Origin: Macrostomum hystrix
Lineage: Eukaryota; Animalia; Platyhelminthes
DNA length: 64,000 nt
Direction of reading: 5' to 3'
NCBI GenBank assembly: GCA_950097015.1
Contig: CATNEN010000039.1
Coordinates: forward strand, 17,546,001 to 17,610,000
Shown: positions 14,201-37,300 of the stretch, one piece after another
Numbering within the stretch: the stretch's first letter is position 1
Layout of the letters: every line of letters starts with the position of its first letter
Translations under genes and position numbers: made by a program
The notes under the pieces: model-generated
What the model was told of the DNA's origin: nothing
Seen by the model: only the letters and a program-made list of their open reading frames with translations
Database searches by the model: none

Positions 14201-14944
14201 CATCTCTTCCCATGGCACCGAAAACGACTCGCTGTACAGCTTCAGCTCTCGAATCAGAAGCTTTTGTCGGCGCAGTTGATCACTGTCTTCGTCATTTTCG
14301 TTCTCGCTTTGAAAGTCTCTATCGGTTGGTAAATCCGCATCTTTGTTACCCCGCTTTAACATGTAGAAAAGCGGTGTGAAGTGCTTGTGGTCCTCCTGTC
14401 TGGGGTCCACGAAGACGGAGCCGGACATCAGGGCTTGCAGGACGTACCTAGCTACACAGAAATCTTCGCAGCTAGGGCAGACCTTTCCAAAAGCAATGTG
14501 CAACAGGTTCTGTCGACGCTCTGTAGTGTTATAAAAGACTGCCGATGAACGGGACTCCCTGAGTGCCAGCTGCAGCAGGTAAATTAGCACCCTGTCTGGT
14601 TGATAGCTCTGCTCGTCTTGCGTGTCGATGCTTGTAGTTGGCGACGCACGCGGATGAACCCCAACTTCCAGGCTCATCGACAGAGCGATGAGTAGCGCGT
14701 TTTCTCGATTCTCGTTTCGATGACTCAGCAGCTCTGTCACTGTTAAATCTGTGTACTCACAATTCTCGCAAACCCCAACTGCATGCAGTGAGTGCTCTGC
14801 AAAGTACTTAACGAGGCTCAGGTCGCCAGTCTTGACGGCCAGAATCAGCGGTGTCTCTTTGCTGCGGTTGGTTTTCACTTCACCGTTTTGCATGACAAGC
14901 CGCAGCAGCTCAGCCGATCGTATCTGCCTGTCGATTGAAGCCAT
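11213..14944 (-). CDS. Ankyrin-repeat TRP-family cation channel, single coding exon (~1243 aa)
   Basis: Ankyrin motifs ETPLILAVKTGDLSLVKYF and WTALHFACNGGHSESMAYLMQRG; pre-S1 CIQQLVEKMW; six hydrophobic segments including YLFDIWNVYD; S6 NLVMFNMLIAKLSNT; TRP-box-like WLALRHELLIDYCRLSSWPPPLNI. The first in-frame ATG at 14944 is in GCCATGG context (ORF track starts at TTG 14995). Confidence 0.88.
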   Translation of the reverse strand: MASIDRQIRSAELLRLVMQNGEVKTNRSKETPLILAVKTGDLSLVKYFAEHSLHAVGVCENCEYTDLTVTELLSHRNENRENALLIALSMSLEVGVHPRASPTTSIDTQDEQSYQPDRVLIYLLQLALRESRSSAVFYNTTERRQNLLHIAFGKVCPSCEDFCVARYVLQALMSGSVFVDPRQEDHKHFTPLFYMLKRGNKDADLPTDRDFQSENENDEDSDQLRRQKLLIRELKLYSESFSVPWEEMLVNSYGMDVAHICASSNSIQFLMKHQIEEMAPGSGLHLILYHNEPAEFDSQMVLGGPIDDQEMDRKEKTLRHIQLQPQTFKYGLWTALHFACNGGHSESMAYLMQRGFSLQDCTRNGATCIDLVFAKPDRQEAILCAFQIVSDGAEGRAGPLGRSWVLEYAACVDSVRGALDNCEGDCERTEGAATESAADAELDEAWRLFKKSQKYRGLTSLDEMNVKSLMYMCFENDSATQYRALIRSTFWKRAIENPKLYGFHLSGEAIDEVLPDRDFIKFFINVMEELPEMEAEVPIKERLGVKVDFMWWTFEGLSLDRRQSNAVSRRPLFSYRDNGKVFLRKLDKPTTYFRLLSMVDLAIITGRCTMAKALLITRQFDLIPTAVSAIIRCNRLIQEEHLINYYPIRDANPELRSVKAFSAKVAINAIDILFRGCRDREADLVFEYLLGKMGTHDGTGRESALPHSKRLVRKMELKRGKELNQSLSTLELIRKSEYVDFYGAECIQQLVEKMWHEPPEYHNNNSNHAYESAVRLVDRSQSGKPNLVQRLKRHLQCPRRRLILYAASTVFYIAILITSLTFPSIRWNWTDIVLICFLFTLAIQEGHECYIRSTTISEGFRSYLFDIWNVYDLLNISFLMAALSYKAVIRFGQWGELDDPDATAIGDMESAYTHFCYKILMSHALFMVSMRFLKILRFSRSIGVNIVMLPYIFYRDLMPFVTILFLMIVSFGTIFMSLLTVGRYRFDGSSIQRRNDSILFEIYTRPLLAAFGDFQIDALEGCDHYGTNDGCYFASARLFYKRFVLIAFLLTVNLVMFNMLIAKLSNTVSRSEKRWQLLWLALRHELLIDYCRLSSWPPPLNILGILWSALQKCFKRTCNSNAELDPEDARKRLSMLGRNHERFILRQADRFRRMRYRMQTRIVETIQDDIEEELLGDDINWSGASIQFDRTKQANSRGVSASANDAVSKKLDELLRRSRRMAAEDFESADALNSQGTVLYSEA

Positions 14945-16413
14945 GGCGTTCGGGTTGCGCTGAAGTCTCCGGGCGTCCTTGATGCGTACCTCCAAAGCGG
15001 CGATGAGAGTTGTTGCAAAAGCTGACCGGTGTCATACAATGAAAGACAGGCTTTTTGTACCACTAATCATTAAGCGCTACACGTATAACTCTAAATTTGC
15101 GCGAGTAGTCAAGGACGTTTTATTACTCCAAGCTATATTTTAAGCTCACCTGAATTGTCAGCTAGAGTTCCGGAAGATTCAAAAAAGCTCATTTTTTGTT
15201 TGTCGATTTATTTGACTTTTGCATGCTTCCGTGCTATTCCAGCAAAAACTCTGCAGTTCTGTCTCTCTCCGATGCCTAATGAATGCCAAATGTGTCAATT
15301 TATATATTTCATTGCTCTCCCAAGCATGCTTTTTCTCAGTTGCTGGTCTCACTCGACAACAGATGAGGCACAATAGCTGCCCCCAGTCTACTCTATTCTT
15401 TGTGTTAAAAAGCAACTTTGACCTCGTAAACAGCTCACAAAAGGTAGGAAATCTAAGTTGAGAAACTTTTTGGCACCCAGACAAATAGCTGTTCTGCCTG
15501 TACAGGTATCGACTCATATTGTTTTATTTTTGGAAAAAAATAAGCATGAGCCCTCGGTGTATTTACCTGATGTCGATACAAAGAAAGATAGCAAATGGCG
15601 CAAGACAAAAAACAGATGAGCATTGCTACACCATAAACTGAACAGCTCTTCAATCTGAGTTAAGCTAAAATATAGTTTTTGAGAAGCCACCCTGTTGTAA
15701 AAGCACCTAAGGCGCGAGGAACTCAATCATCACGCTACTGGCCATAAAAATGAAGAGAATTTTAGTGTCAGACTAGCAAAATTTGTACCCGCTTTCGAGA
15801 GTACAGCTGATCACTTTTGCTTCTTGCGTTCGCTCGTATTTGACAGTCCAAACTTTAGCACCAGTCTCTGTTTCCGTTGCTTCCGTTGCAGGGTGTTATA
15901 AACCCTCATTTACGGTTTGTTGGCAAATTACCCAATAATATCCCCTAAAGCTAGCGATTCCCCAAAACTGGAAAATGCATCTCATCTAAATGCTCAATCT
16001 ATTCTCAAAGCAGCTAGCAATGAGCTTGCAAAAATCTCATACAAGGTTTGTGATGTTTATTTATCAGATTTTTCATCTCACAGCAGTTCATATTAATCTC
16101 ATAGCATCTTACTCATAGTAAATTATCCCTCTCTAGTAACTTACTCCACTGAGTAGGCAAATTCCAACGGTGGAGAATCTTGCACACAAAATCTGAAAAA
16201 GATTGGCATCAGTTGAAAACGAGACACTGAATTGTCCCAGAAAAATACCCAATAACATATGACTTGGAATTCGGCAACCAATCGAGAAGGACAAGGCAAA
16301 AATCTTCACTACCATAAATTTGTCACTGCTGAGTGAGTTAGACCTGAAAATTCACTTCTAGCAGACCAGAACTTAACTAGTTCTCATTTCAGACTTTCTG
16401 CAGCAAAAACACA

Positions 16414-18097
16414 ATGCGCTTCTGCTTTAGCTTAGCCTTGCTCTTGTCGGTTTCACGGCTGACGTCAGCTGAGAGCCGTCAGTCCATGTGGCAACGTGTC
16501 GTCCTTCTGGACAACATTTGCCTGGCGAGCTCCGACACGCAGCCAGCCTCCGTGATCCCGGCGTTCGCTTCGAGAAGCCTGATCGAATGCGCGGCCAGGT
16601 GCGACAAAGTTCAGGGCTGCCTGGCCTGCGGCCAGGAAGCTTACGACAGGCGAATAAGGCTCGTGATGAACTCTACTGTCTCTGCCGCGCTTGACAACTG
16701 CAAAGTCATATCAACCATGGATAGAATAGAAATTTTGGTGACAAGTGCGTGATTACTGTGTGGCTGCTAAAGTTAAAAAATGAGAATTTTTAGTTTAAGA
16801 ACATGTTGCGTAAATATGATTTTCAAATCCTGATAAAACTTTGGCAGCACTCTGTCTTCCTAAACTGAAAGAAGCGGTCTTTCTGGTGGCCGTGAACTCT
16901 TCTGGCGTCTCGAGTAGCCTGGCCGAGTTGCTCTGCTCCCGCTGGTGCGGCCAGCTCGCGTCGGACGGCTCCCAGTTCGCGACCCTCGGTGCCGTCGCCA
17001 GAGCTGCTGGAAGCGGGTCCTCGGTCCTCTGCACACCTCTCTCGGCCTCCGCCTACTTCGCCAGCGCCATCGCCTCCGGAGGCTCCTCAGCGATTGACTT
17101 CTCGCCGATCGCCGTGTCGCTCAACTGGCGTCTCCTGTTCACCAATGAGAGCTGGTGTACTCACACTGCAGTGGGCAATGTCCCGCCTCTGCTCCACCTC
17201 GCATGGTCGCAGCCTCTCCAGCTAGACGTTTGCGCCCAGGCATGCGTGTGGCGTCCGACCTGTGAGTTCTTCGTGTTCAACGCCTCCGGCTGCTTCGAGG
17301 GATCGCTCAGCCTCTACCTGAACAGCCGCCTCCAAGGCTTCACTGGCTGCAGCATCTGGCACAAGGCGCGCACCTGGGCCTCATCAATGCTCGCCTTCTA
17401 CACGTTCAACTCCAGCATGCTGAACCTGGCCAACCCCGCCATCATGCCAGCCGTCAACAACTCGCCCATCGACATCGGTCCAGACGGCTTCCAGGTTCCG
17501 CTCAGCACCTCGCAGTTCGTGAGGCTCAACCTGTCGCACATTGGTTTCGATTTGCTTGTCAGGTGAGCACTACTTTAAACAAGAAGTTATGACGTCGTTC
17601 TTAGCCATATGCCTATTGTTTATTCCAGGAGCGACAAACCGGTCTCCTTTGTGCTTCTTTTTACCCGTACCAGCCTGAAGGCCCGATCTGAGCTGCTGTT
17701 GTTTGCCAGTTGCTCCGGCCCGACCGTTTACAACGGGGCCATCAATGAGCAGTCTTCCAGCGGCAATGTAGCCTGGTTCGTGAACACTCTGACAGGGAAC
17801 TGGCAGGAGGCCGATTCTGTCCTTGCTGGGTCCACCTACTCCTATCCGAGCAGCGCCCCTATTAGCTACGTTGTGTCCATGAACTCAACCACTGGCTACT
17901 ACATTGTGAATGGCAAATTAGTCACCACAAGCTTCAAAAAGTACCACAGCACCTATGGCTCGGACCCAGCGGCCATCGGCTGTTTGTACCTGGGGTTCAA
18001 CCCATTTTACATCGATTCCATCCTGAACGGTCGCATCAAACAGCTTGGAGTATTTTCCAGAATGCTCAGCGTCTCTGAAGCGCAAGAGCTGTTTTAA
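16414..18097 (+). CDS. Secreted PAN/apple-like + ConA/LamG(pentraxin)-like protein, copy 1; exons 16414-16744, 16848-17562, 17629-18097
   Basis: Signal peptide; CAARC..C..C and CAQACVWRPTCEFFVF PAN-like motifs; C-terminal YIVNG..LYLG..LNGRIKQLGVFSRMLSVSEAQELF LamG/pentraxin-like end; GT-AG introns of phase 1 and 2 keep the frame. Confidence 0.8.
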
Positions 18098-19469
18098 GCG
18101 TAGCTGCTCAGCTCATTGAGCTGTCATAGAAAACTGAAAAGACTGAGCAAGAAAAGTGGATTTATTTTTCTTCTAACGTTTCTATGTTAAGTAAAAAAGG
18201 ATTTATGAAAATAAAAAAAACTTAACTGCTACGATCGCTAGCACAGCTGCATAGCATTCCATGTGTCATCCTTTTGTCTTTCTTATTTTAAAATCTTCCT
18301 TGTAGTAATGAGAGTACTGCTTTTGAAAGTGTTTACAGCAGGGGGTAAATAGTTGAGCAATCTAACGCGTTCGCCTCTCGCACAAGGATTATCCCCAAAA
18401 AATCAATCACGCGAAGTTTCAAAGAGCTTTCCCGGTTCCAATGAAGGACCTTCGTACGGATGGAAGTTTTACGTCAAAGTAACAACACACCATAGAAATT
18501 TTAATGAAGGCGATATCCTGTGCATTTAGCGAAGCACTTCAGACTAATTGGTTTGTAACTTGCCAAGTCTGTCCATAACTGCTTGTGACAGTCACTTCAA
18601 CTTTAAAAATGCATCAACGTACGTCTCCTCTATCAAGAACTGACGCGATGACGTCAGAAATCAAGGCGTACTTTTGTGGATCATTGGCTTCTTTTAGACC
18701 ATTACAATGGATCAGGACAGCATATTGCACATACGAATCTATGCAGCAATCTATATGCCCTCGTATTGATGAACTGGCTTTGACACGTCGAGAACTATAA
18801 TAGCGGCATTTCGAAACTGACTGATTTGTACCGGCGTGAAGTGCCAATGAACTCAAGCTTGGAGTGCGAAGAAGCGTAGGCCGTGGCGATTTTTAATTTC
18901 AATAATTTCGAAGAAATCCATCGCACTCAAATTTCGTATTTAGGAATCTTTATTAAGATTGCAAATATCTCGCAATTGCTAGACTCAGAAACAGCTTTAT
19001 TTAGTTTGATTGACAAAGGTCTTCCACGATAGACAAGATCAGCAACGTGTTTACGACATAGAAGCCCGTCTGGCGGGGACGTCAAAAGAGGCAAAATAAT
19101 TCACGTCAGTCACCAAACTGCTAGCGGAGGCGAGGAAGATAAAATTTTATGTTGGGCCGCTAATTTCAGTGATTAAATAAATCAAAGTGTGTTTGCTCCA
19201 AAAAGCTTGGAGGCTTTAGCAACAATAAAAGTGGCTTTTTCTGTTGGACTCAACTGCATACTGAAGGACAAGAGTCATGTGGGCTGCGCGATAGATATTG
19301 AAATCCGCTTCAAACCGGTGGGTCTGTTTTGAAATACAAAAAATATTTATTTCTTTAATATTGCTTGCTTATGAAAAGCTCTTCATTTGTTAAAGTTGCT
19401 GCAACTGCAAAAGCTGCACGTACGATGCACATGGGTGAATGACAATATTGAAAAAGCCAAATGAGTTAG

Positions 19470-19622
19470 TATGCGAGAGGGGCTATCTGGGACAAACGTT
19501 TTCGCGGCCTCTATAATCCACAATCTGTTAACTTTATTACTCCTTTTCCCTGATCTCTTTGGGAATAATGAAGTTAATGTGAGGCTGCGAAAACGTTTGT
19601 CCCAGATAGCCCCTCTCGCATA
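19470..19622. mobile_element. Small MITE-like hairpin element, ~42-bp inverted arms
   Basis: TATGCGAGAGGGGCTATCTGGGACAAACGTTTTCGCGGCCTC ... GAGGCTGCGAAAACGTTTGTCCCAGATAGCCCCTCTCGCATA (1 mismatch). Confidence 0.7.
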
Positions 19623-21039
19623 GTACTCAAATGTAACTTTTGCTGTAAACGAGAAATACGTTACAAGCTAATTACCATAGACAATTTCACGGGACTTCAG
19701 AAGCAAAGCGGCAGCTCTTGCCGTGAATTTGGCGCCCAATATAGGGCCGACTCCCAAGGCACTGTGATCGGTGTGCCCGGCTATGAAAAACTGATACAAA
19801 CACCTGTGTGAGTGACAGCTGATTAACTTAGATCCGCGATCCTATCAGCTGCTTAACAGTAAAAAGGCAACGCTATTTTCTCCCCTGTGGAATGACAACG
19901 GGGGTATTTCAATTACCCAACTGCCTACTCCACGATAGCTACCAAGCATTTCGACCCACCCAGCGCTCAAAATAGACCTGAGCGGTCCAGACCGGCTGAC
20001 CTGACGGCCTGGGAAGCAATGACGCAGAGACCGGGAGCCTGCAGTGCACCCTATCAGCCTGCGAACTCGTGCCAAGAATGCTCGCGGCTGGTGTGTTGGG
20101 TGGGGGACCATGGCAACGCGGGGCAGAGAGATAACTGCTTGTGTGTAAAGCCCTCCGACCCCCCTAATGCTAAACACTGCGCCTAATTACTTGAATATAA
20201 AATACACTGCTTCGTAGATGTGCCCCTGCACTGAGGCTTTGAGATGTGAGTCTCACACTCATAACTGTTGGCCTCTGTGGTCAGTACAAGTTCAAGTCTT
20301 TCGGTTAGTGTCGGCAGAAGGTAGCAGGCGGCAAATAAACCTGCTATAGTGATTATGGAAATTGATTCATCGGATAGAGAGGAAAATTTTAGTCCGCGGT
20401 CTGGATTTTCATGGAGATTGGTTGAATATAATCGGCTAAATTGATTGCAGTTTTGTTGATCTAGACTGTAAAATGGTAAAATTTAAATTTCGGAAATTGC
20501 TTTTCAAATGCATTCAGTGACGAGCTATCTTGTGTACTACATGTACTTCGTAGTTCGCTGTCCTCTCTAGTCAATTTCGTCCGTTGAACTTTCCCTTCTT
20601 CACTGTCAGTTTGTCACCACGCTAAGCTTCTGTACCTATTCCATCGATCTCTCGCCTTACAACACCTTCTGACAGGTCTGCCTCTCACCTTCTAGCTTAT
20701 TTCTCTCACCCCAGTCGCGCACTCTCCGTAAGGCCAGTCAGTCCTATATTAAGAGTATAAATATAGGATCCTAGTCATTTTGTCAACTGGGGATTTACAC
20801 GTACTTTTACAATGATATTAGATTTACAGGTAGCGCATACATTTGTGCATACTGTATAGATTATGCGATGCAATGTCATTATAATTTAACCACTGGAACT
20901 CATATGGACGTAAGCTTAGGCAGCATCCTCCTCGTTTCTCATTCTAGACTTAGGACCAGACACCGGTGGAGTGACACTGCCATAAACATACAGTATAATT
21001 TATAAAAAACAAAAATGAAACGTTTATTAAGCAAGCTAT

Positions 21040-21140
21040 TCCCTAAGCTCGATTCCGCGACAAACCACATTCATTTAGGGCGAAGCCGCGGAGAGAGGGG
21101 CTTGTCGTGAAATTTAAGCCCTTAAAAGACAACCTCCAAG
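21040..21140 (+). mobile_element. SINE family B fragment
   Basis: AGCTCGATTCCGCGACAAACCACATTCATTTAGGG..GCCGCGGAG..CTTGTCGTG matches the other B copies. Confidence 0.6.
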
Positions 21141-21850
21141 TCATCTGCCGTGGAGCCAGTTGGCCAGCTCAGTATGACGGGCCCGGAAGCCATCGCAATT
21201 GAATTGCAGGATGAGCTCTAGGCCTGGCTCCCCGTCAGTCTTGGGGCGACCGTGCTTCGGCGGTTGGCGGCGGCTGTTAGCGTGGTCGCAGCCGCCCCGC
21301 AGGCGAAGGACCTCGTGGATGGGCTAAGATTCGACGCCCTGATGTTTGGCCGATGTCCGCTTCCGTTCATCGTCGCTGATTGTGCTGAAACTTTTGCTCC
21401 AGGTGTAGCATCGCTGATTGGGAAGGCCATTAGCCACCTCTACCCGGTAGCTCAGGTCGGAGGCGTCCGGGGACCCCATAGTGTTAACGTTGAGTGTGCC
21501 TTTTTGTCACCAAAATTGTCATCTGCTGGTTGCAGGGGACTGCTCGCATGAGGGTGCAGTCGAGTACGAGTATAACATTTTTATACCAGTGGCTTTGACG
21601 AATGGAATTCAGCTTGTTGGTCACTTCGTCCACTGCCATATTGTGAGACCAAACATTTTAGTCACGTCGAAAACTATTTGACAAAATCTAGTATAATTTG
21701 TTTCATTCTCTTTTTCTCTTCAATCATAATTAAAAAGAAGAGTTTGACTATTTTAAATCTGAGATTCTACAATCCATTCGGGGCCAATGACCGACGCATA
21801 TTACTCTTAACAGCTTATTAGGGAAATATGGCTCGTTAAACTCGTATAAA

Positions 21851-22478
21851 TCACGACTTGAAGGTCGGGGGTTCGATTCTTGACTTCACGGCTGGAATAA
21901 CTTGTGTACTTTAGCAAGAAACTTAAAATTAATAATAATGATTACAGGAGGGCTGCGGGCAATCGCATATAATTTGGTGACACTAGACCCGCAGCCAGCA
22001 AGTTCGCTGACTCCTGAGCACACACGCACACAAATACCGTACGCAGGGACAGGCTCACACAGGTGTGTACATCTGCCCTGAATTTCTCATCGTCTGGCAG
22101 TGTGTACTTTCATGCTGTGCCTCGAAGGCTAGCTCTGAAGGGCGTAAATTGCACGACAAGCCTTTAAGCCTCCGCGGCAATGCCCCTAAATAAATGTGGC
22201 CTCGTCGTGGAATCGAGCTCGAACATTGGTGCGAGAGGCAAACGCGGTAAACCGCTCTGCCACCGACCTCCCTATCAAGACACTTAACTCTGCATTGCTT
22301 CATTTCACCCAGCTGGTTATCGGGTACCAGCATCAGCTGGGTAATTGAGGGTGGGTATGGCGTCCCCCCAGTCCATGGACTGAACAGTTGTACGCAGCCT
22401 TCAGATGCGCCGCGCAGTTGTGCTGTCGGCTGTGCATATGGCCTGATTGGGGCAGGTGTTATTAATTATTATTATTGT
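21851..22478 (+). mobile_element. tRNA-derived CORE-like SINE family A, interrupted by SINE B
   Basis: 21851-21926 and 22273-22478 align with the intact copy at 59762-60073. Confidence 0.85.
21927..22272 (-). mobile_element. Full-length tRNA-derived SINE family B, nested in SINE A
   Basis: Minus strand reads GGGAGGTCGGTGGCAGAGCGG (A box) .. GAGCTCGATTCC (B box); 3' GCTGCGGG..CCCGCAGC stem and (ATT)n tail; 15-bp TSD TAGCAAGAAACTTAA/TATCAAGACACTTAA. Confidence 0.85.
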
Positions 22479-23005
22479 TCATAAGGACATAACATTTATT
22501 TTTCGTAAACCAAGTAAATTTTGGTTATTGGTTGAGGAAATTTGATTGAAATTCGATAACAAAATATCACAAAAAAGCTTTCTTTTGCTGTTATTAAATG
22601 TGTTTCTACTTCTAGCTTTCGAGTATATTTTAGGTCTCAGCTAAACAAAGGATGTCAAGAGTGCTAGATTGCTCTTCGACTGTTAGAAGCTTAAAGGAAC
22701 AGCTTAAAGCGACTGCTAATTCAGAAGAGAAAAGGAAAATTTGAACAGTTAGGAACAGCATTTTTATTTATTAATTCCATTTTCTTAAAGTGACAATTAA
22801 AGTTTTAGTTTGATTAAAATTGCTTCAATAATTTGGAATTGCCTAATTAATTACGAAATTTTTATGTTTCTGGTGCTAAAAATTCATTTTGTCCGACGAA
22901 CTAAGCGAAACTAATCAACTGAAGTGGGTATCCATTTTTTTATTATCAGGGCAAACACTTATTGTTTCACGCTTCAGTTTAACAAAAAAGTAGTTTGTGC
23001 ATTCT

Positions 23006-24834
23006 TCAAACCAGTTCCATGACTTCAGCTTCGTTTAGCATTTTCGCGAAAATTCCCAGTACCGCAATTCGACCATGTAGCATTTTGGTTGGCGGACTGT
23101 CATAGTTAAAGCCCAGGTAGAGACAGCCCAGCTGTACTGGGTCCGCCCCGTAGCTGCTGCTGGCCGTGTAGAAGGTGCCGTTCAGCTTCACTCCGTTCAC
23201 TATTATGTAGCCGGCGGTTGGGCTCAGGGCAATGGCCACTTGGATTTTAGCGCCACTTGAGTAGTTGTAGCTTGAGCCCTGGTTGGCGGACTTCACCACT
23301 TGCCACTGACCAGTGAGGCTGTTCACATACCAGCCCTCATTGCGCAGAGACTGTTCGTTGATGGCTCCGTTGTAGTTGACGTAGTCGGAGCAGTCAGCAA
23401 ACAGGGCTAGTTCAGAACGAGGCTTCGGGCTGCCACGGCTGTACCCCAACAGAAAAGTGAACGCTGTGCTGGCCCTACAAAGTAAAAAATAGTTAGTGAA
23501 AATCTACAGCGCAAACGGGCTAATGAGTACTTGATCACGAAAACTAAGCATATGTTAAATGAATAGCATCTGCTAGTTAAAACTTGCATGGTCCCTTTAC
23601 AATTCGTTCAGCTAACAATATTTTAGAGCTTAAAATACTCTGCACATCAAAGCTATCACGACATATTATAAAACGAGTATGATCTCGCCTGACGAGCGAG
23701 TCGAAGCCGATGTCTGACAGCCTGAGCTTCACGAACTGCGAGGTGCTGAGCGGAACCTGGAAGCCATCTGGACCGATGTCGATGGGCGAGTTGTTGACGG
23801 CTGGCATGATGGCGGGGTTGGCCAGGTTCAGCATGCTGGAGTTGAACGTGTAGAAGGCGAGCATTGATGAGGCCCAGGTGCGCGCCTTGTGCCAGATGCT
23901 GCAGCCAGTGAAGCCTTGGAGGCGGCTGTTCAGGTAGAGGCTGAGCGATCCCTCGAAGCAGCCGGAGGCGTTGAACACGAAGAACTCGCAGGTCGGACGC
24001 CACACGCATGCCTGGGCGCAAACGTCCAGCTGGAGAGGCTGCGACCATGCGAGGTGGAGCAGAGGCGGGACATTGCCCACTGCAGTGTGAGTACACCAGC
24101 TCTCATTGGTGAACAGGAGACGCCAGTTGAGCGACACGGCGATCGGCGAGAAGTCAATCGCTGAGGAGCCTCCGGAGGCGATGGCGCTGGCGAAGTAGGC
24201 GGAGGCCGAGAGAGGTGTGCAGAGGACCGAGGACCCGCTTCCAGCGGCTCTGGCGACGGCACCGAGGGTCGCGAACTGGGAGCCGTCCGACGCGAGCTGG
24301 CCGCACCAGCGGGAGCAGAGCAGCTCGATGAGCGTTTTCGGATCAACCGTGGTGTTCACCGTCAGAAACGGAGCCCGCAGAGTTTCGTTTGTTGCACAAA
24401 GTTCTGCAATTGTAATTGTAAATTTGGTCACGGAGAATATTGATAGGTTTTCAATGAAGGCGGGGGCAATTATTCAATATTCGTGTGATTAATATGCAAA
24501 TTATTAGTCGCCTTATTTAGCTGCTCTTACCTATCGAAATAGCAGTCTTTACGATAAGTCGGCAGTCTCCGCGAACAAGGCGCAACGAGTAGTTCCGCAT
24601 CAACAGCCACTTGCTTCTCGAGACCGACTCGTCCGAGTTGCAGGCCAGACAGTCGCTGCTCAATGAGCACTCCGCTGCGCACTCGATGGCGCTATTGGCG
24701 GCTGCGACTCGAGTGAGAGGGTCCTGCGTGCCGCAGAGTCCGCGCGTCGATCTAAACTGTTGCGAGACAACAGCACTCGCCGCGGTTTGGTAAACTGGCC
24801 AGCACAGTATGAAGCAGGCGATCCAGATTTGCAT
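23006..24834 (-). CDS. Secreted PAN/apple-like + ConA/LamG-like protein, copy 2; exons 24834-24531, 24403-23689, 23474-23006
   Basis: Same architecture and intron phases as copy 1; the second intron has a GC donor (AG|GCGAGA). Confidence 0.75.
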
Positions 24835-25261
24835 TCTGGCGCTGATTGTTCGCTGAAATTTAGAAATCCACTTTTGCAATGGATTCAGAATTCAATTTTT
24901 AGAGAATTTAAGCACCAGCCGTTAATAGTTTGGGAAGGCATTCGCAGCTTACAATGGTTTTTATCGCTGTGTTTCATTCGCTGCTCCGAGCTCATTCAGG
25001 GTGGCGCGGTGTCTGCACAGCCTGGAGAATGGAACTCAGAATGGAGGCAAAAGACTTACATGTTATTTTTTATGATTATTCAGGAAAAAAATGTACAAAA
25101 AATTCGATTGGTTAAAAATTTATTTTTAATTCATCAAAAACCGTCTTCTTTGGCGCCTGAATGTAGAAATTCGCCAACCAATTAATCAAAGCAGTGGAAC
25201 CATATTGTTCCAACAATAAACTTGGCTCGAGCATCTTCTGTGTCGCAATTGTTTACTAATC

Positions 25262-25460
25262 GTAACAATAATGATGATTGCCTGAGGGCTGCGGGCAATG
25301 GCAGATATTTTGGTGACACTAGACCCGCAGCCAGCGAGTTCGCTGACTCCTGAGCACACACGCACACAAATACCGTGCACAGGCACTCGATCACACAGGT
25401 GTGACCATATGCCCTGACTTTTTTTGTTGTGCACTCTCACTTGTGTCTTATTGAGGTTCA
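25262..25460 (-). mobile_element. SINE family B, 3' part
   Basis: GAGGGCTGCGGGCAAT..TTTGGTGACACTAGACCCGCAGCCAGC..GCTGACTCCTGAGCACACACGCACACAAATACCGT matches the 21927-22272 copy. Confidence 0.8.
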
Positions 25461-25585
25461 GGCACCGTGTAATTTGAATTTATTAAACTTCGGCGTTGTA
25501 AAATTTCGAAGCTGTTGTGAAATTTCGGTTGCATGAAGTTTATATGTTTCGACGATATGAAATTTCGGGTTTGTGAAGCGCCACG

Positions 25586-27923
25586 CTCAGTTTGACTGTC
25601 ATCGCCTCAGTTTGAATATTATCCCCTCAGTTTGACTGTTATCCCCTGAGTTTGACTTCTATCCCCTCGGTCTGACTGTCATCCCCTCAGTTTGACTGTT
25701 ATCCCCTCAGTTTGACTACTATCCCCTCAGTTTGACTGTTATCCCCTCAGTTTGACTGTTATCCCCTCAGTTTGACTGTTATCCCCTCAGTTTGACTGTT
25801 ATCCCCTCAGTTTGACTGGTATCCCCTCAGTTTGACTGTTATCCCCTCAGTTTGACTGTTGTCCCCTCAGTTTGACTGCTGTGCCCTCAGTTTGACTGTT
25901 ATCCCCTCAGTTTGACTGTTATCCCCTCAGTTTGACTGGTATCCCCTCAGTTTGACTGTTATCCCCTCAGTTTGACTGTTGTCCCCTCAGTTTGACTGCT
26001 GTGCCCTCAGTTTGACTGTTATCCCCTCAGTTTGACTGTCATCCCCTCAGTTTGACTGTTATCCCCTCAGTTTGACTGTTATCCCCTCAGTTTGACTACT
26101 ATCCCCTCAGTTTGACTACTATCCCCTCAGTTTGACTTCTATCCCCTCAGTTTGACTGTTATCCCCTCAGTTTGATGGTCACCCCCTCAGTTTAACTGTT
26201 ATTGCCTCAGTTTGACTGTTATCCCCTCAGTTTGACTGGTATCCTTTCAGTTTGACTGTTATCCCCTCAGTTTGACTGTTATCCCCTCAGTTTGACTGTT
26301 ATCCCCTCAGTTTGACTGTCATACCCTCAGTTTGACTGGTATCCCTCAGTTCGACTGTTATCCCCTCAGTTTGACTGTTATCCCCTCAGTTTGACTGTCA
26401 TCCCCTCAGTTTAACTGTTATCCCCTCAGTTTGACTGTTTTCCCTTCAGTTTGACTGTTATCCCCTCAGTTTGACTGTCATCCCCTCAGTTTGACTGTTA
26501 TCCCCTCAGTTTGACTGTTATCCCCTCAGTTTGACTGTCATACCCTCAGTTTGACTGGTATCCCTCAGTTCGACTGTTATCCCCTCAGTTTGACTGTTAT
26601 CCCCTCAGTTTGACTGTCATCCCCTCAGTTTAACTGTTATCCCCTCAGTTTGACTGTTTTCCCTTCAGTTTGACTGTTATCCCCTCAGTTTGACTGTCAT
26701 CCCCTCAGTTTGACTGTTATCCCCTCAGTTTGACTGTTATCCCCTCAGTTTGACTGTCATCCCCTCAGTTTGACTGTTATCCCCTCAGTTTGACTGTTAT
26801 CCCCTCAGTTTAACTGTTGTCCCCTCAGTTTGACTGCTGTGCCCTCAGTTTGACTGTTATCCCCTCAGTTTGACTGTTATCCCCTCAGTTTGACTGGTAT
26901 CCCCTCAGTTTGACTGTTATCCCCTCAGTTTGACTGTTGTCCCCTCAGTTTGACTGCTGTGCCCTCAGTTTGACTGTTATCCCCTCAGTTTGACTGTCAT
27001 CCCCTCAGTTTGACTGTTATCCCCTCAGTTTGACTGTTATCCCCTCAGTTTGACTGTCATCCCCTCAGTTTGACTTCTATCCCCTCAGTTTGACTGTTAT
27101 CCCCTCAGTTTGATGGTCACCCCCTCAGTTTAACTGTTATTGCCTCAGTTTGACTGTTATCCCCTCAGTTTGACTGGTATCCTTTCAGTTTGACTGTTAT
27201 CCCCTCAGTTTGACTGTTATCCCCTCAGTTTGACTGTTATCCCCTCAGTTTGACTGTCATACCCTCAGTTTGACTGGTATCCCTCAGTTCGACTGTTATC
27301 CCCTCAGTTTGACTGTTATCCCCTCAGTTTGACTGTCATCCCCTCAGTTTAACTGTTATCCCCTCAGTTTGACTGTTTTCCCTTCAGTTTGACTGTTATC
27401 CCCTCAGTTTGACTGTCATCCCCTCAGTTTGACTGTTATCCCCTCAGTTTGACTGTTATCCCCTCAGTTTGACTGTCATCCCCTCAGTTTGACTGTTATC
27501 CCCTCAGTTTGACTGTTATCCCCTCAGTTTAACTGTTATTCCCTCAGTTTGACTGTTATCCCCTCAGTTTGACTGTTTTCCCTTCAGTTTGACTGTTATC
27601 CCCTCAGTTTGACTGTCATCCCCTCAGTTTGACTGTTATCCCCTCAGTTTGACTGTTATCCCCTCAGTTTGACTGTCATCCCCTCAGTTTGACTGGTATC
27701 CCCTCAGTTTGACTGTTATCCCCTCAGTTTGACTGTCATCCCCTCAGTTTAACTGTTATCCCCTCAGTTTGACTGTTATCCCCTCAGTTTGACTGTTATC
27801 CCCTCAGTTTATCTGTTATCCCCTCAGTTTGACTGTTATCCCCTCAGTTTGACTGGTATCCCTCAGTTCGACTGTCATCCCCTCAGTTTAACTGTTATCC
27901 CCTCAGTTTGAATGATATCCCCT
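25586..27923. repeat. Satellite/minisatellite array, 20-bp unit ATCCCCTCAGTTTGACTGTT, ~115 copies
   Basis: Directly visible, with recurring variant units. Confidence 0.98.
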
Positions 27924-28729
27924 AATAACTTTTAGAGGACATCTTTGGTTACAGACTGATACACTTGCCATCCGATTTCAACTCTGTGAGCACTTTGCTT
28001 CCATCAGTTCAGGCACAGAAAAGGTTAGGTAGCTTCAGCCGATAGCCTATAATCTAGATTCAACACAATTTGTGAAAGCAGCCGAAAAGAAAAAAACTAG
28101 TGATTCACAAATTTTTGTATTGTCGTTGCCAAAGGCTTCCTTCGCATTGTGTGAGCTGTTTGTCCAGAGGTCAGGACCTACATGCATTTTGTGTGCGCCG
28201 TATTGACTTGCTCTGCTTATGTCAATAGTTTAGGCCATCACTTCCTAGCGCTTAATGCGGAAACCATTGAACGTAGAAAGACCACAAACGTTCTACGTTA
28301 TTGTTGATTAATTATTATATCGTTGAATCAATCCAGATTTGCTATAGAGGTTTTTACAGTGCAATGTTATCTCCAGGGTATTCGACAAGAACCGCTGAAT
28401 ATCTCGACGGTGCTGACGTCGGACGGCTTTGAAAGTTAGTCCATCATAAAAAGGACGAAAATTGTTTAATCCAAATGATGGACTTTTACGAAAATCGGTC
28501 ATTCGGTTTGGGAGCTACAGTAAAGAAGGCAGGGTGTTTGAAATACCCCATGGTCTTTCCCTGTGGGCAAAATAGCTGATCTTTCTACTGTTTAGGGAGG
28601 CCCGGTTACATTTAAGTGTCGACCAAACTACTAAAAGCTTTTCGTTTATCAATTCTGTCTGTTAATTTAACTCATCAATTTAATGAGTGCTTAGACCTTG
28701 CAGCCAGACAGAAGCAATTCTGCCCATTT

Positions 28730-28950
28730 CACTGACTCCTGTTACACTCGCACACAGATACTGTACACAGGCGCACATACAGGTGTGTACCTGACCTAAT
28801 TGTCCGGCAGTGAATGCACTCTCACTTCATGTGCATCGGATGGTTGGCCCTGACGGACTTAAACTGCATGATAAGTCCCCAAAGCTTCGTCACTGCGGAT
28901 GTAACCGAAATTAAACGTGGCCTCGCCGATGATTCGAGCTCAGGTCCATA
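28730..28950 (-). mobile_element. Degenerate SINE family B copy
   Basis: CTGACTCCTG..ACAGGTGTGTAC..GTGGCCTCGCCGATGATTCGAGCTCAG similar to the other B copies. Confidence 0.65.
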
Positions 28951-30660
28951 GTGTGGAGTCAAAGGTGTTAATCTATGTGTTCTATTCACCACCCTTTCAT
29001 TATTTAATTACGGCCTTCAGGGCAGGCCTGCCTCGTGGACTGTCATTGTAGTAACTAAGTTATAGAAACTGTCATTCATTTGTCCCGAGACAGAGCAGAA
29101 CAAATTAACGAGCTAGCGACCATAAAATTACAGTTTTCTTCTCCAAAACTTCTTTCAAGCGCAGCTCACAACATAAAACAGGCACACACACAAGCTTTAG
29201 TTTTAATATAGAGAATTTATTCAATTTCCTTTTGAAACAAAACTTAAATAAAGTCGGTTGGACAAAGTGGAAACTGTCTTTGTACTCTCCAAGGGTCTGT
29301 CAGGAAGTTGTCTCGATGCATTTATGATTCCATGGTTTCAACTGAAGCTAATTAAAACCTTAGTAAATGTGACTGAAAATGACAAAATAAATGAAATGAG
29401 AAAATCAAATTCTCTTGATAATTTGATAGAGTACTTTTATTTATGGTTTTATGTATATGATAGTGGCTGCTTAATTGGCATTCTGTGGTTAGAAAGTCTG
29501 AGGCTGCGTTTAATGGTCCGAGGCGAGCGAAGCGAGCCGAGTACTATTGAGCGTGGCCGAGGACTTTTTAATCATAGACTGCAAATTGAGCAGCCACTAT
29601 TTTATATGAAATTCGATTTGGTTTGGCGCCCATTATATGGTTTAATGGGCCCCGTTTTCGGGACCATTATATGGCACACTGGTTCAAGACTTCGCATTTC
29701 CAACCATAGACGATAGATTCGTGGCTCAGAATGCGCCCATTAAACGTCCATTAACGACGAAATCGGATTTTATATGCTCTTTCGGACTATCTCATAGCTG
29801 TTTTGTAAAGTTATATAAATTGTCTATGGTGGTGGTCGCTCTCCAGTGGCTTCATGGCGTGTCGTTTTACGAGATATGATATTTGTTCACTTTGAAGTCT
29901 AATTTCAGATGAGTGCGTTCGTTTAAAATTCAAACAATGTTATATATTTAAACAAAAAAATCAGAACTAATTAACTGGAACTGCAAAGACCACGGAAGTA
30001 TCATTTTAAGTTTTTAGTCCATCGTTGCTAAGCTGTTATATTGTTAGGCTTCCTTGCACTGAGGAAGGAATTAGTTCCCATCCAACTAGAATAGGTTCGT
30101 TTATTAAGCAGTAAATAATTCCTAATTATCGCAAGATTTTGTGTTAGCATATAATCTTATGCTACTATAAGTAGGCTACCGTAGATTTAGAAAAAATGCT
30201 GCCGTGCACCCTGATCCATTGCGCTGTCACCTCAGATTGGGGGGGCCATGGTCGTGCTGCTTGGCACAATGAAATTTCCTACAGGTTATTAAAAACTGCA
30301 AATAAAAACTGAAATTTTCAGTTTAATTCGTTGCATGCTTTTTGTAGAACTGTTATAACTGCCACTTTTTTATATTAAATGTTGTTTAAAACACACACCT
30401 GATAATTAGTATTTCGGCAATCAATCAGTTAATGCGAGCGCATCATCATGCTGCGACAGCTTGAAAAAAGTAATATGTGATGCAGCACTCCTATTTTTTA
30501 GTGCCTATTTTACATTTTACACGAGCAGACGTGGCTTCACTCGCTCGAATAAATCGAAGGCTAATGTAAAATTTCAATTCCATTGTGACAGTTTTCCAGG
30601 GATGCAGTACTGCAGTTTCTCTTTAGAATTGTTTGCTCGCGAACTTAGGTACACTATAGT

Positions 30661-32451
30661 TCACACGAGCTCGGTTAGTTCTTCAACACTGAGCAGCTTC
30701 GTGAATATGCCGAGGGTTCTCAGCCTGCCATAGAGAATCCTGCTTGGCGGGTTGAAGTTCTGCTGCCCAAGGTAGAGGCAGCTGAGCTGTACTGGGTCCG
30801 ACCCGTAGGTGCTGGAGGCCGTGTAGAAGGTGCCGTTCAGCTTCACTCCGTTCACTACAAAGTACCCGGCTGTTGGGCCCAGGGCCATGGCCACGTGGAT
30901 TGCAGTGCCATTTGGATAGTTAAAAGTTGATCCCTCGTTGGCGGATTTCACCACCCACCAGCGGCCAGTGAGGGTGTTCACAAACCAGCCCTCATTGCGC
31001 AGAGACTGTTCGTTGATGGCTCCGTTGTAGTTGTCCACATTGGAGCATTCCGAAAATAGCGCAAACTCGCTGCGAGCTTTCACATTGCCTCGACTGAGGG
31101 ACAGCACGAATGTAAATGGCGTGTCAGCCCTGAAATATATCAAGTTTCTGTAGTCAGTAGTAGTATTATTATTCAGTAGTAATACTTGTCAAAGTATGGC
31201 AGCCTTAAAATATTTAAACAATTAATAAGAAAATTTATTTCTGTTGAACTTACCTGACGAGCGAGTCGAAACCAATGTGCGACAGGTTGAGCCTCACGAA
31301 CTGCGAGGTGCTGAGCGGAACCTGGAAGCCGTCTGGACCGATGTCGATGGGCGAGTTGTTGACGGCTGGCATGATGGCGGGGTTGGCCAGGTTCAGCATG
31401 CTGGAGTTGAACGTGTAGAAGGCGAGCATTGATGAGGCCCAGGTGCGCGCCTTGTGCCAGATGCTGCAGCCAGTGACGCCTTGGAGGCGGCTGTTCAGGT
31501 AGAGGCTGAGCGATCCCTCGAAGCAGCCGGAGGCGTTGAACACGAAGAACTCACAGGTCGGACGCCACACGCAGGCCTGGGCGCAAACGTCCAGCTGGAG
31601 AGGCTGCGACCATGCGAGGTGGAGCAGAGGCGGGACATTGCCCACTGCAGTGTGAGTACACCAGCTCTCATTGGTGAACAGGAGACGCCAGTTGAGCGAC
31701 ACGGCGATCGGCGAGAAGTCAATCGCTGAGGAGCCTCCGGAGGCGATGGCGCTGGCGAAGTAGGCGGAGGCCGAGAGAGGTGTGCAGAGGACCGAGGACC
31801 CGCTTCCAGCGGCTTTGGCGACGGCACCGAGGGTCGCGAACTGGGAGCCGTCCGACGCGAGCTGGCCGCACCAGCGGGAGCAGAGCAGCTCGATGAGCGT
31901 TTTCGGATCAACCGTGGTGTTCACCGTCAGAAACGGAGCCCACAGAGTTTCGCAAAGTTCTGCAAATCAAGCCGTTGTGGTCGCACAAAATTTGTTGTCT
32001 AATAGACATTTGACTATTAGATTTTCGTTCATTAGAAAGCTTTTAAAACTGTGCGCAAGAGAATCTTTTGAAAAAATTGAAGCTCGTGAACTCCCTGATA
32101 GGTTTTGCAGTTACCGTATTGCATTTGCGTACCATTTGCAACTTCTATCTTCGTGATGATCCTGCAGCCTCCGAAAGCAAGGCGCAATGAGTGGTTGCTC
32201 AGCAGCATCCACTTGTCGCTCGCAGGAGAGTCCGTTGAGCTGCAGGCCAGACAGTCGCGGCTCAATGAGCACTCGGCTGCGCACTCGACGGCAGTATTGG
32301 CGACTGCGACTCTGTTGAGAGAGTCGTCCGTGCTGCATAGTCCGCTTGTGATCCAGAACTTCCATAGGGCCTCACTAAATGAAGCAGTGGCTTCGCGCTG
32401 TGCCCATGGGCTCAACGTAAGAAGCAAAACTAGCAGCTGCCCCTGTTTCAT
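30661..32451 (-). CDS. Secreted PAN/apple-like + ConA/LamG-like protein, copy 3; exons 32451-32133, 31959-31254, 31129-30661
   Basis: Signal peptide MKQGQLLVLLLTLSPWA; canonical GT-AG introns with the same phases as copies 1 and 2. Confidence 0.8.
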
Positions 32452-34310: not shown

Positions 34311-37300
34311 ATGATTAGCTTTTTTGTAGTAGGCTTTGCTGCTCTCTTTATCGTTCTACTTATCGGTTTTCTTCTGTATGCCTCTCCAGTAAGTAGTTTT
34401 TGAACACTTTTGAGCAACCCAATTCCCAAACAATTTTTTGTCCTCTTTTCAAACGCTATAAAGAAAAGAAAGTATATTAAAAAGTCTCTTTGGTGTTATG
34501 TTAGAAGTCAAGGCGAGTGTGTGCGAGCTACGAAACGCTTAAAGCCAGCGATGGGCAGAGAGCCGATATATATATTATTGTTTAGTCAAGTGCAGTGAGC
34601 AATGTACATTGTACGCGTCAATGGGGGACTGGGGGGCAGGTGCACTGAGAAAGAGAAAGACTACACATCGGCTAGCCAGCAACGATCATTAGGCCTACAC
34701 AACATTTGGCAGCTACTACAACTAATTATGCTTTTGTAACACAGACAATTAAGAATAAAAACTCTTAAACTAGACTTCCTTCATTTTCTATCTTATTTAG
34801 TTAGATAGATAATTCTTCGTCATATGCACATACCTGATATGATATGCCTTGGTTAGCAGTTTCTGATTATTTTAAATAATATTAGGCCTAGAGTAAATAA
34901 AATCGTTAATATGGTATTACAATAAACATGTACACATATCTTTTGTTTTATAATATGTAATAGCCACTAATAGGCCTAGCATAAGGGGGTCTATAGTTTA
35001 TAGGAACCTAGAGGTTCTTGCCTCTTTGTCTTCCGCCATCTCATCTGCCAACAGGCGAGTTAGCTTATTTTTAGGCAAGTGAAATTTATGAGCAGACAAG
35101 TTGGTGAACTTGGCCTTGACTGAATTGAGAAGAAATTAATCACTTGCTATTGCTATCATGCCAGTCTGTGACTGGAAGATCAGCTTACTATTTAGTTTGG
35201 CTATTTCACTAATTTAAACAGATTTGTACATACTTTTTTCTATTTAAAAATGAAAGGAAAGGTCAACTTGCTGCTTCTGTCATATATATGGATATATATA
35301 GATATATATGGATATATATGACAGACTGTCTATGATATATTATAATTCCTTTCATTTCATGCCCCTATGATTTATGATAGTTTTTACTTTTATTTTCTGG
35401 AAATAAAATTCATAGCAGAAAACTTTGTTTTAGTTGTCCTTACAACAGACAAGTCTATACAATGGTTTTTTTAAAAAGTGGTAGCAGACTAAAATACCAC
35501 AAACTGAACCTAGGACTAGGCCTATTATAGGTTGTGACAGTAGTGTAGTAGGGATGCTTTTATTATTTCTTTAAAGTCAAATTCGTGCCTATGCTTTTTG
35601 TTTGAATGCGCAAAATATTTTTTATATGTAAAATATTTAAAATATTTTGTCAAATTCGTTTACTTTAACAAACATTTTCTTTTGTGTATATAAACGAGTG
35701 TAATTCAGTTGAGACAAATCAACGTGCCAGTGTGGCGAAAAGCAAATAAGCTATTACTGAAGAAGAAAAGTGTTGAGTTGGTTATTTGAGGCTGTGACCC
35801 TCTGATCCACAGAAAACGCCCAGCAAAGACTGGAGAATAGTAAGCCAGTGCCTTAGAAGGTTAAACCGGTCGTGCCGAGTGATACGCTACCATTAGAGAG
35901 AAAAGTAGAGAGACAAGCCCTGTTACAACTTTGGTGGCAGCGGAAAGGATCAGAGAAACAGCGAAATAACCCCATTGAGGAGTAACAATGGATCAAGCTC
36001 AAGTACAAGATTTGATGACTGTACTCGCGGAAGAGCTGAGAAATCGGTTGGAGATTGCTCCAACACGCCATGTGAAGATCCAAAAGTTCACACCTAATCA
36101 GGATATTCAGGTGTGGCTCACCGCATTTGATCAAAGATGCGAGACAGAAGGAATTGATGTGGACCATCGAAAGCAGGAATTGCTTGCCAACTTGGACTTG
36201 TCCACAGCATTTGCCTCTGTACAGAGAATGAACCTCCCAGAAAACCTTGACTACGAAGAATTCAAGGAGCGGATAGCAGAAAGATTCGGACGAACTGGAA
36301 GCCCAGCAGAATTCAGAGAAGAGTTTCGAGGAAGAATGCAAGGCAAGAATGAATCGGTAGAAGCCTATTCAGATAGTCTGATTGAACTGGCTGCCAGAGC
36401 CTTCCCAAACATGACAATGGAGCAACGAGAAGATGAACTGGTTGAGCAATACATCAAGGGAGCCAAGATATCCGCTGACATGAGGGAGAAACTAATCTTT
36501 GCTCAGCCTGCCAATCTACAGGAACTAAAGAGAATGCTTAGAAGGTTGGAAGCCGCCTGGAGCATGACACACAAAGGTGCCGGAGTAAGGATTACCAGAA
36601 ATGGTGAAGAGGAAGAGGAGTCTCTAAGGGCAACAATTGTGAAGCAGAAGGAAGAAATTGAAAGACAGCAGAAACTCTTGCAGGAGCTCACCAGCAAAAT
36701 GGCTGAGAAACAGTACGTACCAAGGAAGCCATATGTACCTAAGTTCCTGCAACAGCAGAATACGCAGTACAATGGGCAGCAATTCTTGAACCAGAACCGA
36801 ACCTGCTTCAACTGCGGAAAACTCGGCCATATTGCCAGATTCTGTCCTATGAGGATGGGCAACGGTCAGCAGAACTTCCAGAACCAGGGAAACTAAAATA
36901 CGAGGGACGTAAGTCGAGGCCCCGTTCCTCCGGAAAATCCTTTAACAAATTCCAGGCCTCAGAGTTTGTAAATAGTGCGTATAAAATTGATAACCAACGT
37001 TTTGCTTACAAGAAAAATAATTATTATTTCAACAAGTTTAATCAGCCGCGAGAAATGAGACAGCACCATGCGTATGCACCCAGCACTGCAAAAATGCAAG
37101 CACATTCGAAAGCACCAGTTACACCATGTGAAACAAGTCAGAAAGCCGCTAGCAAAGAAATTAAAAGTGAGTCACCCATTGAGACGATCAGAATCCCAGA
37201 GCCGGTCAAGAAAGGTCAGGAAGCAATTGTGAATGGAAAGATACGAAAGCGAGATATTATGTTTTTGATAGACACAGGAGCCGGAAATAACTTCTTAAGT

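Follow-up and report, generated by a model that had tools for sequence, protein, structure and literature searches.

What keeps an internal stretch of about 600 bp almost identical between genes whose other exons are far diverged is the question raised by a 64,000-nucleotide segment of the genome of the flatworm Macrostomum hystrix (assembly GCA_950097015.1, contig CATNEN010000039.1, positions 17,546,001 to 17,610,000 of the forward strand), referred to below as the window. The window contains three paralogous genes, c1, c2 and c3, and a fourth, c4, lies on the same contig (fetched locus L015); the predicted product of each is a small secreted protein with a signal peptide, two apple-like modules and then a ConA/LamG-like jelly roll. 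Comparison of the four genes indicates that repeated short-tract interlocus gene conversion is very probably the best explanation of the near-identical tract in exon 2.

The four genes have one shared architecture of three exons with introns in phases 1 and 2, and all four models are in frame (Table 1). Exon 1 encodes a hydrophobic N-terminus and a Cys-containing module, exon 2 has a length of 703-715 nt and exon 3 of 469 nt, and intron 1 (phase 1) and intron 2 (phase 2) measure 86-173 nt and 66-214 nt, respectively, among the four copies. The initial annotation of the window is upheld as to gene coordinates, division into three exons and the inverted orientation of c1 relative to c2 and c3. 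That annotation described three copies, all of which are confirmed, but the set is larger, as a genome-wide search for the shared cassette at the DNA and protein levels found one further gene, c4, with its own flanks about 116 kb upstream of c1. The intron 2 donor of c2 (23687-23688) is GC (CAG/GCGAGA), while GT is found in the other three copies; from its sequence this would represent either a GC-AG intron or a splicing defect.

Within the window, a repeat search returned inverted arms of 681 nt, pairing 16887-17567 with 31249-31929 (96% identity) and with 23684-24364 (95%), and a direct repeat between c2 and c3 (23680-23979 and 31245-31544). After the loci had been oriented and aligned using MAFFT, first three-way and then four-way with c4, the homogenised tract within exon 2 comprised 595 ungapped columns, placed within 3 bp of the coordinates given initially for a cassette of about 600 bp, and 587-590 of the 595 positions were identical (98.7-99.2%) in all six pairs. 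The numbers of differences between c1 and c2, c1 and c3, and c2 and c3 were 5, 6 and 5, with synonymous and nonsynonymous changes of 5/0, 4/2 and 3/2, respectively, matching an earlier estimate of about 5-8 mostly synonymous substitutions. Outside the tract, nucleotide identity between copies was 42-66% in exon 1 and 55-72% in exon 3, and the introns, at 33-55% and rich in gaps, are unalignable, as had been reported. The view that the flanks are far more diverged than the cassette is supported by these values, but in exons 1 and 3 the similarity of c2 to c3 clearly exceeds that of either to c1, and the view applies at full strength only to c1 and c4 compared with the other copies.

The contrast is also present at synonymous sites. 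Synonymous divergence (dS, estimated according to Nei-Gojobori, as was the nonsynonymous divergence, dN) was 0.017-0.039 in the tract, with dN of 0-0.006, vs. 0.94 to saturated in exon 1 and 0.84 to saturated in exon 3, where dN was 0.24-0.49; dS in the tract is therefore 30- to 100-fold below that of the flanks, and uniform dS along the genes, which the initial annotation had named as contrary evidence, was not seen. Variable sites accounted for 10 of 595 positions in the tract vs. 513 of 740 in exons 1 and 3 (Fisher p 2e-169), five of the 10 being private to a single copy, and within the tract all copies are equidistant. Purifying selection at the protein level cannot account for the identity of the tract, as its synonymous sites have hardly changed either.

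Regarding the relationships between the copies, the flanks follow the tree ((c1,c4),(c2,c3)), to which 31 of the 46 informative sites of exon 1 and 27 of the 48 of exon 3 conform, whereas exon 2 contains all three possible two-by-two groupings. The 5' extension of the tract (about 50 bp) has 25 two-by-two sites that group c1 with c4 and c2 with c3, and c1 and c4 are near identical there despite having only 46% identity in exon 1. Inside the tract, two-by-two sites group c1 with c2 and c3 with c4 at positions 17242 and 17339, and c1 with c3 and c2 with c4 at positions 17263 and 17485; the latter grouping continues into the 3' terminal 40 bp of exon 2, where c1 and c3, and likewise c2 and c4, agree at 37 of 40 positions. 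The two types of 5' edge and the two types of 3' edge are present in all four combinations among the four genes. The Hudson-Kaplan minimum is four exchanges, or at least two without the possibly recurrent CpG site at 17263, and the probability that the four shared two-by-two sites arose by parallel mutation is about 5e-8. Few polymorphic sites are left in a tract that has been homogenised across all four copies, so that a GENECONV-style run test on such sites told nothing for most pairs; site-density and compatibility tests were used instead.

The borders of the tract fall inside exon 2 and inside the predicted jelly-roll domain, at positions that vary by pair, and the pattern is therefore not one of exon shuffling; the 3' edge cuts through the domain, which favours a recombinational origin over a modular one. 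Pair-specific edges had been described initially for c2 and c3 on the 5' side and for c1 and c3 on the 3' side, and both were recovered (Table 1). Between c2 and c3, the proportion of synonymous differences (pS) is also patchy outside the tract, being 0.11-0.12 in the middle of exon 3 (approximately 23110-23250 and 30770-30910) vs. 0.88 at its ends, and 0.23-0.31 in patches of exon 1 vs. 0.95 elsewhere in that exon, which points to older exchanges elsewhere between these two more similar genes. The ectopic gene conversion suggested in the initial annotation is thus borne out by the fall in dS, by edges inside the exon and by groupings in conflict with the flank tree, and its ongoing or repeated nature by the conflicting partitions of the four two-by-two sites.

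Table 1. Coordinates of the four genes and of the segments of exon 2 compared (positions in the window unless a locus or contig is given)
Feature	Position	Strand	Evidence and remarks
Gene c1	exons 16414-16744, 16848-17562, 17629-18097	+	504 codons; open frames, splice motifs, exon lengths summing to a multiple of 3, hydrophobic N-terminus
Gene c2	exons 24834-24531, 24403-23689, 23474-23006	-	495 codons; open frames, splice motifs
Gene c3	exons 32451-32133, 31959-31254, 31129-30661	-	497 codons; open frames, splice motifs
Gene c4	L015 4857-5208, 5295-5997, 6081-6549 (= G000:C39:17445856-17447548)		complete paralogue outside the window
Homogenised tract, c1	16928-17522	+	alignment; dS 0.028-0.039 vs. 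other copies
Homogenised tract, c2	24323-23729	-	alignment
Homogenised tract, c3	31888-31294	-	alignment
Homogenised tract, c4	L015 5363-5957 (= G000:C39:17446362-17446956)		genome-search match G000:C39:17446359-17446954
5' extension, c1/c4	c1 16877-16927	+	49/52 identical; about 50% to c2/c3
5' extension, c2/c3	c3 31889-31946, c2 24324-24381	-	57/58 identical
Exon 2 3' end, c1	17523-17562	+	37/40 vs. c3, 30/40 vs. c2; c1 grouped with c3 and c2 with c4, columns 1317-1331

The proposed mechanism would start from four anciently duplicated paralogues, c1 to c4, between which the exon 2 stretch of about 600 bp would have been swapped repeatedly by non-allelic (interlocus) conversion, in both orientations and over distances of 6 to 116 kb, with short conversion tracts of varying end points leaving the pairwise mosaic edges. 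Exchange may stop at the tract edges because heteroduplex cannot spread into flanks of such divergence, or under such different constraint, and an island of identity bounded in this way would be self-sustaining. The variable ends appear to be old and constrained rather than actively diversified, because dN/dS is 0.25-0.3 in exon 3 and 0.4-0.75 in exon 1 and no window is convincingly above 1, contrary to the initial proposal that the ends diversify. The same annotation considered the family a candidate for an undescribed system. The mechanism is very probably ordinary interlocus gene conversion and no new kind of system: conversion limited to a region is a known process, and the 220-Mb genome contains four copies of the tract, each inside a complete three-exon gene model, and no silent donor cassettes.

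The same superfamily shows the same kind of mosaic homogenised tract in other clusters, for which 14 intronless genes (L031-L044) of two clusters on contig C1 (G000:C1:25.156-25.169 Mb and 26.398-26.455 Mb) were compared. Between L042 and L044, identity reaches 99-100% over a stretch that starts with the apple module and takes in the jelly roll's first half, and falls to 38% in the signal peptide and 73-85% in the C-terminal half; L033, L034 and L035 are 97-100% identical over the C-terminal half, and L032 shares about 360 bp and the last 90 bp with them. The homogenised tracts are therefore at no single protein position across clusters. The genes of these clusters differ from c1-c4 in being intronless with one apple-like module, whereas in c1-c4 there are two introns, one more module at the N-terminus and a GC3-rich tract, which lies at a different position.

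Regarding base composition, the tract has 64% GC, and its GC content at third codon positions (GC3) is 0.83-0.84, compared to 0.61-0.69 in the flanking exons 1 and 3 and 0.59 in a neighbouring intronless open reading frame (ORF), in agreement with the GC3-rich tract reported initially. Eight of nine variable tract positions are of the weak (A/T) vs. strong (G/C) type; each of the four weak/strong singletons has the weak base as its rarer allele, and the one remaining singleton is a change between A and T. As judged from these unpolarised changes, the GC3 of the tract fits GC-biased conversion without proving it.

The reading of repeated conversion has to be weighed with several points that count against it. 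The GC bias included in the initial proposal fits the GC3 of 0.84, but GC3 excess is absent from the converted tracts of the two other family clusters on C1. Furthermore, the comparison concerns the assembled bases of one genome and four paralogues, and the polishing of the assembly with short reads by Pilon can erase a few true differences, so that true identity may be slightly below 99%. The assembly has 220,453,370 bases in 42 contigs, consistent with the published description of about 220 Mb and 42 contigs for the inbred line SR1, whose PacBio reads were assembled by canu, with polishing by Arrow and Pilon (Wiberg et al., 2023, PMC10468722). The mapping of the short reads by bwa in that polishing (PMC10468722) leaves room for an artefact, in which truly diverged tracts would have been homogenised by mis-mapped reads in Arrow or Pilon. 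This is extremely unlikely, since tracts of about 55% identity cannot be polished to 99%, as their reads would not cross-map; private variants and distinct edges are also retained by each copy, a PacBio read is far longer than 600 bp, the 42-contig assembly has low k-mer multiplicity, and other clusters show the same pattern. Constraint at the nucleotide level, by an overlapping frame, an antisense gene or a structured RNA, could also suppress synonymous change, and long alternative frames are indeed open in c2-c4, as expected at 64% GC; these frames are broken in c1, however, no Rfam match was found, the RNA folding z-score is +0.6, and constraint alone gives no conflicting partitions, making this account scarcely credible. 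The private variants could otherwise stem from one recent homogenisation, in which a single donor overwrote all the genes and the copies then decayed independently with no further exchange, as half of the variable sites (5/10) are confined to one copy, but the four two-by-two sites with conflicting partitions and the differing pairings at the two edges need several events, and a single event is very unlikely.

A further possibility is that conversion is combined with selection, such that an identical central module is favoured, for instance for a shared partner or for oligomerisation, while differences are maintained in the N-terminal apple module and over most of the jelly roll; the result would be a constant-plus-variable recognition family. 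The genes L042-L044, with a homogenised front or core, private signal peptides and a variable C-terminal half, would suit such a role, as would a large (at least 108 matches) and lineage-restricted family. However, the position of the tract differs by cluster, with the C-terminal half as the homogenised part in L033-L035, the variable parts have dN/dS values below 1, patchy conversion between c2 and c3 is found outside the cassette too, silent donor cassettes are lacking, and similarity-dependent conversion alone yields the same pattern, with slowly evolving parts staying homogenised; a selected central module is accordingly considered unlikely. A broader version, in which the superfamily is a modular recognition repertoire whose cluster cores are fixed by segmental conversion shaped by selection, with diverged N-terminal and jelly-roll modules being reshuffled, is a distinctly doubtful proposition; if true, secreted lectin-like proteins would be diversified combinatorially in the germline.

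Interlocus conversion limited to a region of duplicated genes is exemplified by the human fetal gamma-globin genes HBG1/HBG2, by RHD/RHCE and by the red/green opsins. The likeness to conversion of the HBG1/HBG2 type consists of a short tract of near-zero dS in diverged paralogues, mosaic edges and a tract tree in conflict with the flank tree; the differences are that four genes are involved here, in both orientations and up to 116 kb apart, and that their flanks are saturated, giving a much older background than in the textbook cases. Similarly, conversion between the paired receptors Siglec-5 and Siglec-14 keeps the N-terminal domains near identical while the rest differs, and resembles the present case in that one module is kept identical by conversion and other modules are different. 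The homogenised part of Siglec-5/Siglec-14 is the ligand-binding domain, with a known functional rationale, whereas that of c1-c4 is internal and cuts through a domain. Comparison with diversifying systems of the VLR, FREP or Sp185/333 kind revealed neither diversifying selection in the variable parts (dN/dS 0.25-0.75) nor silent donor cassettes, with only four tract copies in the genome. The cluster is a very clean example of short-tract, similarity-limited conversion, having about 99% identity in a background saturated at synonymous sites, and, in a selfing flatworm with an inbred reference line, it is useful for the study of tract length, edge behaviour and possible GC bias.

Regarding the encoded protein domains, all database searches were run exon by exon. 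The PAN and LamG identities assigned initially are below or just at the Pfam thresholds, and of the two it is the jelly roll that gains support from a structural model of a family proxy. PAN_1 (PF00024) remained below the gathering score for the exon 2 module (16.1 bits, cut-off 21.4, E 0.01) and for exon 1 of c2 (15.8 bits); the conserved Cys pattern of the apple-like module is visible in alignment A3. Laminin_G_3 (PF13385) matched exon 3 of c1 with 27.1 bits (E 5e-6, cut-off 27.6) and that of c3 with 20.4 bits, and did not match that of c2. In the Atlas, exon 3 adjoins Laminin_G_3 clusters (feature score 0.95-0.97), and a search with exon 2 gave no usable match. Profile searches of the PDB with alignments A1 and A3 yielded nothing significant, the best matches being kringle and apple domains (E 0.02-0.3).

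The proxy, the intronless ORF L043, gave an AlphaFold model (18-sequence alignment) with a predicted local distance difference test score (pLDDT) of 82.4, in which residues 126-351 form a ConA-like jelly roll (Foldseek E 1e-7). It resembled the carbohydrate-binding domain (domain 4) of AbnA, with Z 17.4 and a root-mean-square deviation of 3.0 over 182 residues. CBM40, pentraxins (PTX3) and the lectin-like subdomain of clostridial neurotoxin binding domains matched with Z 14-16, and neurexin LNS domains with Z of about 10. Sequence identity to the structural matches was 6-17%, and the proxy is therefore like the ConA-like jelly rolls (Laminin_G_3, CBM40, pentraxins, TSP-N/LamG and the clostridial neurotoxin lectin-like subdomain) in fold only. 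By way of this model and its link to c1-c4 by hhalign, the four genes probably carry a ConA/LamG-like jelly roll. In alignment A3 the jelly roll of c1-c4 begins within the tract, at '...AFYTFNSSMLNLANP...'. Besides the initial 45-50 residues of that jelly roll, the tract encodes the second apple-like module and a Cys-containing segment rich in Ala, Ser and Gly.

Relatives of c1-c4 are scarce in public data. The 298-aa open frame of c2 exon 2 had no match in a word-indexed search of public proteins, and a full HMMER search of 1.84 billion representatives returned two matches only, P0001 and P0002, both 'hypothetical proteins' from the Joint Genome Institute (JGI), which are 38-43% identical in a region made up of the second apple-like module and the beginning of the jelly roll. 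With P0002 as query only P0002 itself and P0001 were found, a metagenome scan with alignment A5 gave no match, and the AlphaFold 2 model of P0002 was too poor to use (pLDDT 44.5). P0002 bridges c1-c4 to intronless genes on contigs C34, C38 and C1, and a profile of these intronless genes gave at least 108 matches in the genome, with clusters on C1, C34, C3, C38, C7, C9 and elsewhere. In hhalign comparisons, exon 2 and exon 3 of c1-c4 were collinear with the intronless family (E 0.0016 and 1e-4). The four genes thus appear to be a divergent branch of a PAN-like/LamG-like superfamily with at least 108 matches that is almost absent from public protein sets, and with them a large and so far unstudied lineage-restricted family of secreted lectin-like proteins gains a three-exon branch with two apple modules.

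Several other features were noted around the four genes. About 1 kb downstream of c4 there is a frameshifted remnant of exon 3 (L015:7537-8018), upstream of which exons 1 and 2 are absent; its best DNA match, at L015 7647-7915, is 94% identical to exon 3 of c3 over 269 bp and 83% identical to that of c2, and the remnant would represent a fifth copy that is broken, or else a fragment that has been converted in part. A direct repeat of 155 nt (21931-22085 and 25267-25421, 88% identical, spacing 3.3 kb) flanks c2 on both sides and may have been left by the duplication from which the cluster arose. Between c2 and c3 (25586-27923) lies a 20-bp minisatellite with the unit CTCAGTTTGACTGTTATCCC in about 117 copies (91% matches), and strong strand asymmetry is present in this area, at 26-28 kb (GC skew -0.33, AT skew -0.42). 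Adjoining the cluster on the minus strand, an uninterrupted ORF of 1260 aa (11213-14995) has the look of a TRP-like channel, its predicted domains being ankyrin repeats and an ion-transport domain. At 35988-41500 on the plus strand there is a Ty3/gypsy-type retroelement in which the frames for gag (zinc knuckle) and pol (protease, reverse transcriptase, RNase H and integrase) are open.

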